A DNA stretch of 64,000 nucleotides from the IMG/VR virus record IMGVR_UViG_3300017971_000185, positions 310,001-374,000 of that record; one strand, 5' to 3'. Both the position numbers and the translations under genes were made by a program. The notes under the pieces were generated by a model. That model was given only the letters and a program-made list of their open reading frames with translations, searched no databases and was not told the origin of the DNA. Below, piece after piece: positions 40,088-41,076 of the stretch; the stretch's first letter is position 1, and each line of letters starts with the position of its first letter.

Positions 40088-40156
40088 ATGGACGACGACA
40101 TTAGCGACATTATCCGACATGGGTTCGTAGCTCAGTTGGTTAGAGCGCTGCCCTGA
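40088..40156 (+). CDS. leader peptide MDDDISDIIRHGFVAQLVRALP, reading into tRNA-Ile
   Basis: ATT..ATT ATC ending 6 nt before tRNA-Ile(GAT); stop lies in the anticodon loop. Confidence 0.6.
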   Translation: MDDDISDIIRHGFVAQLVRALP

Positions 40157-40194
40157 TAAGGCAGAGGTCGCTGGTTCAACTCCAGCCGAGCCTA
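40121..40194 (+). tRNA. tRNA-Ile(GAT)
   Basis: Cloverleaf. Confidence 0.93.
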
Positions 40195-40342
40195 CAGATT
40201 TCCGCAGCCAACAACTGCGGGCCAACACGACCGATAGCGGAAGGAATCCAGCAGCGCAGGGGACGACGATTGATATGTAGAATCGGGCCCTGTTTGACAA
40301 TCTCCGCCGAACCAAGTGCTTGGAACAGAAAGTCCCCTATGA

Positions 40343-40419
40343 TGCGGGGTAGAGCAGGCAGGTAGCTCGTCGGGCTCATAACCCGGAGGTCGAAGGTTCA
40401 AATCCTTTCCCCGCTACCA
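40343..40419 (+). tRNA. initiator tRNA-fMet(CAT)
   Basis: Unpaired 1:72, GGG/CCC anticodon stem, CCA. Confidence 0.92.
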
Positions 40420-40485
40420 AGGAGATCCATGACGCGCAAGATCACATACGATGAGCGAATGCCAAGGGCAGATCTACAGATCTGC

Positions 40486-40562
40486 ACCGGGATAGCTCAG
40501 GTGGTCAGAGCGGGGGTCTCATAATCCCCAGGTCGCCGGTTCAACTCCGGCTCCCGGTACCA
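40486..40562 (+). tRNA. elongator tRNA-Met(CAT)
   Basis: Cloverleaf with CCA. Confidence 0.88.
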
Positions 40563-40737
40563 TGAGCGAGATTCCAGACTGTCTCAAATCGCTTCCCCCA
40601 GAGGAGCTAGCGAAAGTCAAACCGATTTCGAAGGAAGAAGTAGACGAGGCCCTGCGGCAAGGGGCCGAAGACAGACGACGGGCCGAGAAGTACGTCAACG
40701 CCGTCGTGATCCCCAACATCCCTTTCAGGTAAGCGCC

Positions 40738-41076
40738 ATGCTCACAACCGCACATACAGACGACGAGCCACATCACCATACTTATGGTGTCCGTAGCTCA
40801 GTTGGTCTAGAGCGCCTGGTTGTGGCCCAGGAGGTCGCCGGTTCAAATCCGGTCGGACACCCCACAGAGATTCTCGACATGCCTTATGATGTTCACCACG
40901 ACCGCGCACATCTGTGCTCCCACACGGGAGTGATGGGTCCGATGCGCGAGGATGGCAGCCGTCGCTGCATCCGCTGTGGTACGACCGTGGAGCAGTTTAC
41001 TGAGCCGACTCGCACTGCGGGTCGGCATCGTGAGCCCACACGGTCAGGTAGCTCAGTTGGTAGAGCAGCGGACTGA
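40738..41076 (+). CDS. His-rich leader MLTTAHTDDEPHHHTY..., reading through tRNA-His into a small downstream ORF
   Basis: CAT CAC CAT ending 6 nt before tRNA-His. Confidence 0.6.
   Translation: MLTTAHTDDEPHHHTYGVRSSVGLERLVVAQEVAGSNPVGHPTEILDMPYDVHHDRAHLCSHTGVMGPMREDGSRRCIRCGTTVEQFTEPTRTAGRHREPTRSGSSVGRAAD
40786..40864 (+). tRNA. tRNA-His(GTG)
   Basis: Encoded G-1, C73, CCA. Confidence 0.93.

Follow-up and report, generated by a model that had tools for sequence, protein, structure and literature searches.

Short cognate-codon-rich open reading frames upstream of tRNA genes in a huge phage: candidate tRNA-specific leader peptides

Introduction

The control of individual transfer RNA (tRNA) levels in bacteria and phages is poorly understood: tRNA genes are usually viewed as unregulated operon passengers, and the operons carrying them are growth-rate-controlled. 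Here we describe short open reading frames (ORFs) which lie directly upstream of tRNA genes in a huge phage and carry clusters of codons for the same amino acid that the adjoining tRNA serves. They were found in a 64-kb stretch of DNA, positions 310,001-374,000 of the 497,194-bp virus record IMGVR_UViG_3300017971_000185 (estimated completeness 94%). This whole stretch is called the window, and coordinates refer to it unless a contig is named.

The closest described systems are the amino-acid attenuators (hisL, trpL, pheL, thrL, leuL, ilvL). The phage leaders resemble them in several respects: a short ORF led by a Shine-Dalgarno (SD) sequence carries a cluster of codons for one amino acid, the cognate codons alone are conserved while the remaining peptide drifts, and RNA hairpins lie across or next to the regulatory codons, in our case in the His and Lys leaders. 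An ORF with SD and start codon is present in all five Asp leaders with upstream sequence and, for Ile and His, in relatives of the phage, and the cognate codon cluster is retained at 6/6 Asp, 9/10 His and 4/4 Ile loci. Contrastingly, the regulated gene would here be a tRNA and not a biosynthetic operon, and the frame runs into this RNA without meeting a stop codon first.

Three other systems invite comparison. The pheM leader of pheST also senses charged cognate tRNA by leader translation and adjusts the same decoding pathway, but it uses a terminator upstream of synthetase genes, whereas the phage leaders would act on the tRNA itself, presumably at its folding or processing. T-box riboswitches sense one tRNA species by codon-anticodon identity, in cis and before translation-related genes; unlike the leaders described here, which have an SD and a start codon, they bind uncharged tRNA directly with a large conserved fold and no ribosome. 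No T-box was detected by Rfam within 30000-50000 at E<=1, or in the whole window at the gathering score. MgtL-type leaders share with the Asp leader an N-terminal Asp/Glu run in a very short ORF, but they depend on charge, sense Mg2+ and not a specific tRNA, and do not account for the His, Ile and Lys leaders. A run of this type (about 8-10 D/E near the N-terminus) is matched in sequence by the D8 of the Asp leader in the window, while the relatives have interrupted runs of D4-D6 and the His and Ile leaders have none. Finally, ordinary bacterial tRNA 5' leaders, which are removed by ribonuclease P (RNase P), likewise end at the canonical RNase P site; we know of no SD, start codon or cognate codon cluster in such precursors. 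The full-text literature outside subscription journals yielded no description of leader peptides that precede tRNA genes, whether of phages or of bacteria.

Results

The leaders share a general anatomy: an SD and a start codon, 10-20 codons that are acidic overall, a cognate cluster at the 3' end and 4-7 nucleotides (nt) to the mature 5' end of the tRNA, without a stop codon before it. The clearest case in the window is the Asp leader (33081-33130, plus strand), in which the SD AGGAGG (33081-33086) is followed after 8 nt by ATG at 33095 and the peptide M-P-D8-R-L; the last Asp codon ends 6 nt before tRNA-Asp(GTC) (33131-33207, plus strand; supported by ARAGORN, Rfam and the acceptor check). 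The initial annotation had placed similar leaders before tRNA-Ile and tRNA-His, with the same spacing as for Asp, and the coordinates confirm this for all three. The Ile leader MDDDISDIIRH (40088-40120, plus strand) begins with ATG at 40088 and has Ile codons at 40100, 40109 and 40112; its pair ATT ATC (40109-40114) ends 6 nt before tRNA-Ile(GAT) (40121-40195, plus strand; ARAGORN, Rfam 72.9 bits, acceptor-stem check). The His leader MLTTAHTDDEPHHHTY (40738-40785, plus strand) begins with ATG at 40738 and has His codons at 40753 and 40771-40779. Its triplet CAT CAC CAT (40771-40779) ends 6 nt before tRNA-His(GTG) (40786-40864, plus strand, with encoded G-1 and CCA; ARAGORN, Rfam, G-1 opposite the discriminator C73) when the count is made to G-1 at 40786. 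ARAGORN and Rfam put G1 at 40787, so that the distance of 6 nt is valid only to the encoded G-1, which is the mature 5' end of bacterial tRNA-His.

The weight of this coincidence was assessed on the 30 tRNAs whose free upstream sequence measures 18 nt or more, using 200,000 shuffles of the tRNA labels. A doublet of codons for the same residue ends 6 nt upstream of three of the 30 (Ile, His and Asp), and all three doublets are cognate. The shuffles give P=4e-5 for three at offset 6 and P=0.006 for at least three at any single offset from 0 to 30. The association of the leaders with their cognate tRNAs is real and is not due to chance.

Inside the window lie 44 of the 46 tRNA genes of the genome, nearly all on the plus strand and with protein genes in between. 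For the five tRNAs within 40121-40864 the Rfam scores are 59-73 bits, and acceptor pairing is 7/7 at the 5' ends given here. BLAST of the region against deposited phages returned tRNA-level matches only and no close relative, and searches of IMG/VR with single proteins of the locus gave one twin record, identical over the region. A scan for a run of Asp codons followed by a T-loop led to a second phage with a homologous Asp leader, G001 (213 kb). Its syntenic protein block is 60-72% identical to that of the window genome (G000), so unconstrained intergenic DNA is expected to have diverged between the two. The other relatives were found with the ThiF-like protein encoded just upstream of the Ile-His cluster: this protein is 71-78% identical in G002 (618 kb), G003 and G004, 43-57% identical in the more distant huge phages G005-G009, and 65-81% identical in further fragments among metagenome contigs. 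DNA contigs of the phage itself comprise the identical sequence and one slightly divergent strain, in which the Ile leader is unchanged.

In the relatives, next to neighbour proteins of 60-78% identity, the Ile, His and Asp leaders proved to be conserved features with a homologous start, an SD-like sequence and cognate codons. The non-cognate residues and the length vary; cognate codons, start and SD are kept. The retention of these elements and of their distance to the tRNA amid such turnover is the signature of a regulatory leader peptide. Nearly all strongly SD-led ORFs of the clade that read into tRNAs belong to the cognate-rich set. Two statements of the initial annotation need qualification here. 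The lack of a strong SD before the Ile and His ORFs is true of the window, but relatives carry AAGGAG or AAAGGA (Ile) and GAGGA or AAGGA (His); and while the frames do read into the tRNAs, the positions of their stops vary among the relatives. We lean towards the view that these ORFs are translated and that each tRNA gene concerned has one of them as its regulatory leader peptide, which would act on the adjacent downstream tRNA in an attenuator-like manner.

The Asp family comprises six distinct loci, all with ATG and an Asp-rich peptide: MPD8RL, MAD6RL, MD5VHDPN, MED4ADDSY, MNIENDDCDDVDDTY and MDSDDADDSDDIH. At every one of them exactly 6 nt lie between the last Asp codon and the tRNA 5' end as checked by acceptor pairing. 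An SD core of 5-7 nt lies 7-9 nt before the ATG in the five leaders with upstream sequence, the sixth (L106) beginning at a contig end. The leaders have six lengths, the cognate codons are in frame with the start, and GAT and GAC are freely interchanged. The acceptor 5' strands of tRNA-Asp differ between genomes (CCCGCGU, GGGGUGG, GGAGCAG), while the Asp codons are kept.

One could argue that such ORFs are translated but that their cognate content is incidental, i.e. that they are acidic spacers or drop-off ORFs whose nascent chains destabilise the ribosome in the MgtL manner, or which hold ribosomes on the RNA and so prevent Rho termination before the tRNA. The Asp, His and Ile families are indeed all D/E-rich, and MPD8 is like the N-terminal acidic runs reported for intrinsic ribosome destabilisation. 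However, acidity alone leaves unexplained the HHH before tRNA-His, the Ile pairs before tRNA-Ile and the Lys codons before tRNA-Lys, as well as the result of the shuffles and the 4/4 association of the Lys motif with tRNA-Lys described below. Additionally, every family keeps its own cognate residue while the others drift. We consider an incidental origin of the cognate codons improbable.

Four Ile loci are available: MDDDISDIIRH in the window, MGAPDSEIAIPS in G001, MEKEDSDISDIIY in G004 and MEMDTQDESDIGPITE in L106. They share the core (D/E)-S-(D/E)-I-x(0-2)-I, with ATT and ATC as the only Ile codons. The SD is AAGGAG-N6-ATG in G001 and AAAGGA in G004. The Ile frame of the window continues to a TGA at 40154-40156, in the anticodon loop of tRNA-Ile.

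The His family comprises ten distinct loci, whose start codon (ATG or GTG) is at a homologous position (alignment A2) and which share an invariant CAT AC (His-Thr/Ile) near codon 6. The tRNA-His of all ten has G-1 opposite C73, and the alifold consensus is a cloverleaf with an 8-bp acceptor. An in-frame HH or HHH is found near the leader end at 9/10 loci, preceded by 10, 11, 13 or 15 codons and with free interchange of CAT and CAC; as the run is still in frame at four leader lengths, insertions and deletions (indels) must have kept the frame. Seven of the ten loci have a sigma-70-like promoter, TTGACA-N17-TAcaTT, about 25 nt before the leader start, and thus a unit of promoter, SD, leader and tRNA that stands alone. 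In the window the place of this promoter is occupied by a 56-codon ORF (40562-40732, plus strand; no Pfam match), located between tRNA-Met and the leader. As its stop and the downstream ATG of the leader are 5 nt apart, translational coupling is possible. A small hairpin within the 20-codon His leaders was considered and rejected, being weak and shifting its register between groups.

Folding predicts a hairpin (40774-40789, plus strand) between CACCAU of the His codons and AUGGUG, positions -3 to +3 of tRNA-His, which would cover the RNase P site. The pairing is possible at 9/10 His loci, and no covariation is seen because the columns are invariant. It could be, then, that the leaders are elements of RNA only, in which the triplets pair with the tRNA precursor (CACCAU as an 'anti-acceptor' for His, the complement of the anticodon in general) and translation is irrelevant. 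Besides the hairpin, such an explanation draws on G004, which retains CACCAT out of frame, and on the His leaders being free of codon-position periodicity. However, no comparable pairing was found for Asp or Ile, and the Asp codons stay where the tRNA 5' strands differ completely. At locus L109, CAC CAT is kept in frame although the tRNA begins with GCG, which weakens the hairpin. Pairing also leaves the conserved SD, the start codon and the keeping of the frame through indels unexplained, and a codon-anticodon contact of 3 nt is too weak without a ribosome. Thus it is not likely that the leaders act as RNA alone.

A fourth family precedes tRNA-Lys. In the window the mini-ORF MSGIRLKRKT* (43648-43680, plus strand) is directly followed by a hairpin of 8 bp (43681-43701), 18 nt before tRNA-Lys(CTT) at 43720. 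An M-K-R-K... ORF with a hairpin before tRNA-Lys also occurs in G001, G002, G004, the distant G007 and three more huge-phage contigs, and the pairing of the hairpin is kept by compensatory changes. In the distant huge phages the frame passes through the hairpin into the tRNA. When the Lys ORF motif was used for a scan in which the tRNA was left unspecified, four matches had a tRNA within 150 nt downstream, and all four were tRNA-Lys.

The initial annotation took a constant spacing of 6 nt as a sign of a geometric requirement relative to a stalled ribosome. In the homologous loci this constancy holds for Asp (6/6) but not for the other families: the His run ends 5 nt before G-1 in six loci and 6 nt in three, and the distance from the last Ile codon is 6, 7, 4 and 7 nt in the window, G001, G004 and L106, respectively. 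The conserved property appears to be a spacing of about 4-7 nt, which fits the argument from ribosome geometry without proving one.

Asp leaders also occur in bacteria. Two related Nannocystaceae genomes carry the SD-led peptides M-P-D4-H-D-H-D-P and M-D-T-D5-A4-D-I, 4 nt before a chromosomal tRNA-Asp (L125 5826-5942, a metagenome-assembled genome; L283 1500-1620, minus strand). There is no nucleotide similarity between these two leaders, and in both genomes tRNA-His and tRNA-Ile are without leaders. A pattern search of 401 Myxococcota genomes revealed no further tRNA-Asp leader, all 30 matches retrieved being without tRNA-Asp. The D-arm of the phage tRNA-Asp (TTGGTGAAGT) resembles that of these bacterial genes (TTGGTGTAGT), a likeness which hints at a myxobacterial host or donor.

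Among viruses the distribution is narrow. A scan of IMG/VR for five Asp codons with any T-loop gave eight tRNA-linked matches, with tRNA-Asp only in the twin record and G001. Four Asp codons before tRNA-Asp features returned clade members only, and three His codons 3-9 nt before a GGTG....TRGCTCAG tRNA returned the twin and two loci in which ARAGORN finds no tRNA. Within IMG/VR, therefore, the Asp leaders and those His leaders that fit the pattern seem to be confined to the clade. A scan of genome contigs with a loose pattern contained one real tRNA-Asp among the matches listed. The leaders do not co-occur with a phage RNase P RNA, as only the window genome has one, and no synthetase of the AspRS/LysRS, HisRS or IleRS types was found among the phage genes.

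Such a distribution could speak for the absence of any function, the ORFs being chance frames or remnants, e.g. C-terminal gene fragments captured with tRNAs, that persist by ancestry. The genomes are all of one clade and the loci non-independent, G005-G009 have no leaders, and the IMG/VR scans gave Asp leaders in this clade only and, for His, the twin and two tRNA-less loci. A protein C-terminus of G009, ...KKDDDISGS* before tRNA-Ile(TAT), even resembles the DDDIS of the Ile leader. However, drift has had time to act: in the alignment of the six 20-codon His leaders, 24/25 columns vary upstream of the start as against 34/60 within the leader. Cognate codons, SD, start and distance are kept while length and other residues turn over, which is unlike decay, and the Lys family and the bacterial Asp leaders are independent recurrences. 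We find persistence without function very hard to credit.

Two further loci may concern Thr and are given as observations only. In G002 a frame ending ...HVTPTT abuts an odd tRNA-Thr, a possible Thr case. In G003 (L064 3830-3894) an (ACC)15 microsatellite is directly adjacent to an odd tRNA-Thr(AGT). In the phase of the tRNA start the microsatellite reads as Thr15, while the frame from the conserved, homologous upstream ATG crosses it as poly-Pro.

Discussion

If the ORFs are regulatory leader peptides, they would link the supply of charged tRNA to the folding or RNase P processing of the adjoining tRNA. When the cognate aminoacyl-tRNA is plentiful, ribosomes would pass the leader, enter the nascent tRNA and keep it unfolded, so that RNase P and the 3' processing enzymes would be unable to mature the transcript. 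When it is scarce, the ribosome would pause at the cognate codons, and the tRNA could fold, be cleaved and mature. With the last cognate codon in the A site, some 11-14 nt would separate the first P-site base from the first tRNA base pair downstream, which would be at the mouth of the mRNA channel. This placement at the channel entrance is based on published ribosome structures and on helicase mapping. In the His case the stalled ribosome would also cover CACCAU and bar it from pairing with positions -3 to +3 of the tRNA, i.e. remove a competitor of the acceptor stem. The net effect would be a negative feedback that keeps each tRNA of the phage as abundant as translation requires, for example when host tRNAs are depleted. 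The mechanism is inferred, as are the direction of the feedback and the step under control (folding, RNase P cleavage or stability).

The missing terminator also sets the leaders apart from the known attenuators. No terminator-like site is present on the plus strand between the leaders and the tRNAs, where the 4-7 nt between codons and tRNA leave no room for one. The predicted hairpin between the His leader and the acceptor could serve as an alternative structure, but no terminator goes with it. Since the defining terminator was looked for and not found, the leaders are filed as a variant of ribosome-mediated leader control, outside the terminator-based attenuator family.

The lack of a terminator is one of several points that weigh against regulation by leader translation. 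Folding of the Asp and Ile leaders gave no consistent alternative or mutually exclusive structures. A ribosome waiting 6 nt before the tRNA might just as well keep RNase P out, which would give the opposite regulatory sign. The G004 His leader (...DYNTIM) lacks an in-frame His run, and its CACCAT, kept out of frame, points to a constraint at the RNA level. The six 20-codon His leaders show no excess of changes at third positions (12, 12 and 10 variable columns), which means that the peptide sequence itself is not under coding-type selection. The leaders are also not universal among the relatives: tRNA-Ile is without a leader in G002 and G003, two of five genomes, and in G005-G009 the Asp, His and Ile leaders are all absent. 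A coarse genome-wide statistic (at least three cognate codons in the last 10 codons, any frame) gives P=0.33, so the signal is confined to a few tRNAs and is not general to the array. The loci come from related genomes of one clade, and their counts are not counts of independent events. The sequencing runs that contain the phage are of DNA only, none of RNA.

More broadly, tRNA-gene leader peptides may form an undescribed class of cis-regulators, in which the position of the ribosome would decide on tRNA folding and release by RNase P, and which would serve per-tRNA homeostasis in huge phages and some myxobacteria. We put this forward tentatively, as a possibility nearly as good as its contrary. 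They may also allow a response when host defences deplete certain tRNAs. If true, a leader built of the tRNA's own codons would be a direct, species-specific feedback on tRNA supply, the missing counterpart to the attenuators and T-boxes that govern amino-acid synthesis and synthetases. It would also mean that ribosomes gate RNA processing, beyond transcription termination, and that huge phages, with their dozens of tRNAs and, in the present genome, RNAs of RNase P and of the signal recognition particle (SRP), actively manage the decoding apparatus during infection. Being small and modular (SD, 10-20 codons, 4-7 nt, tRNA), the elements could be reused as sensors of charged tRNA.

Other Features of the Window

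Two weaker cases in the initial annotation concern Met. The ATG ATG at 40339-40344 (plus strand) is present as described and overlaps T1 G2 of the initiator tRNA-fMet (40343-40419). With the window genome included, three of five genomes have it, in two contexts: G001 shares the context of the window, G002 has another, and the motif is absent from G003 and G004. It is suggestive only, and we treat this weak candidate as a possible hint. The ORF at 40429-40524 (plus strand) does have an SD (AAGGAG, 40419-40424, 4 nt upstream) and does read into tRNA-Met (40486-40562), but it has no counterpart in G001-G004, and the presumed leader for elongator Met is unsupported. The 140 nt before tRNA-fMet (40201-40342, plus strand) are 88% identical to G001, including an identical block of 36 nt, which far exceeds the identity of the neighbouring spacers. 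This segment may be a promoter or an RNA element; a search with the conserved block found the twin and G001 only.

The window encodes further structured RNAs. A full-length bacterial class-A RNase P RNA lies within the tRNA region at 14315-14653 (plus strand; 247 bits, gathering score 100) and is absent from G001-G009, the 92%-complete G002 included. A match to the bacterial small SRP RNA (4.5S-type) covers the full model length at 39767-39859 (plus strand; 57.7 bits, gathering score 40), between tRNA-like modules and the Ile leader. These modules are repeated structured elements at about 32930-33045, 39420-39560 and 39600-39760 (plus strand) which resemble circularly permuted tRNAs: they have a T-arm, a closed acceptor hairpin that covaries (CCCCGCC...GGCGGGG or CUCCCCC...GGGGGAG), a D-arm and a GNRA-capped hairpin. 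Their matches to YrlA (Y RNA-like) are weak, at 22-28 bits, and they are conserved before the Asp leader in G002 and G004; no Ro60/TROVE protein was found in the genome.

Among the protein genes, a conserved block at 33855-38729 (plus strand) lies between the Asp cluster and the Ile cluster and is syntenic in G001 with 60-72% identity. Its products are a VWA-domain protein, an HNH endonuclease, a JAB-like protein, a protein of 85 residues and a ThiF/E1-like protein. The block looks like a ubiquitin-like conjugation set. Between tRNA-His and tRNA-Phe lies a small Cys/His-rich, zinc-ribbon-like ORF (40879-41076, plus strand; MPYDVHHDRAHLCSH...CIRCG...), which enters tRNA-Phe and has its stop codon within the anticodon loop of that tRNA; the ...FTEP... 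near its end is shared by G002 and G004. ARAGORN further reports two tRNAs with unusual anticodon loops, one with a two-base anticodon at 58101-58173 (Rfam 58.8 bits) and a minus-strand tRNA-Asn(ATT) at 706-781. Finally, tRNA-Ala at 58935 is preceded by a frame whose end (...EEAKAKLEEAGATITIK*) resembles the C-terminus of ribosomal protein L7/L12.

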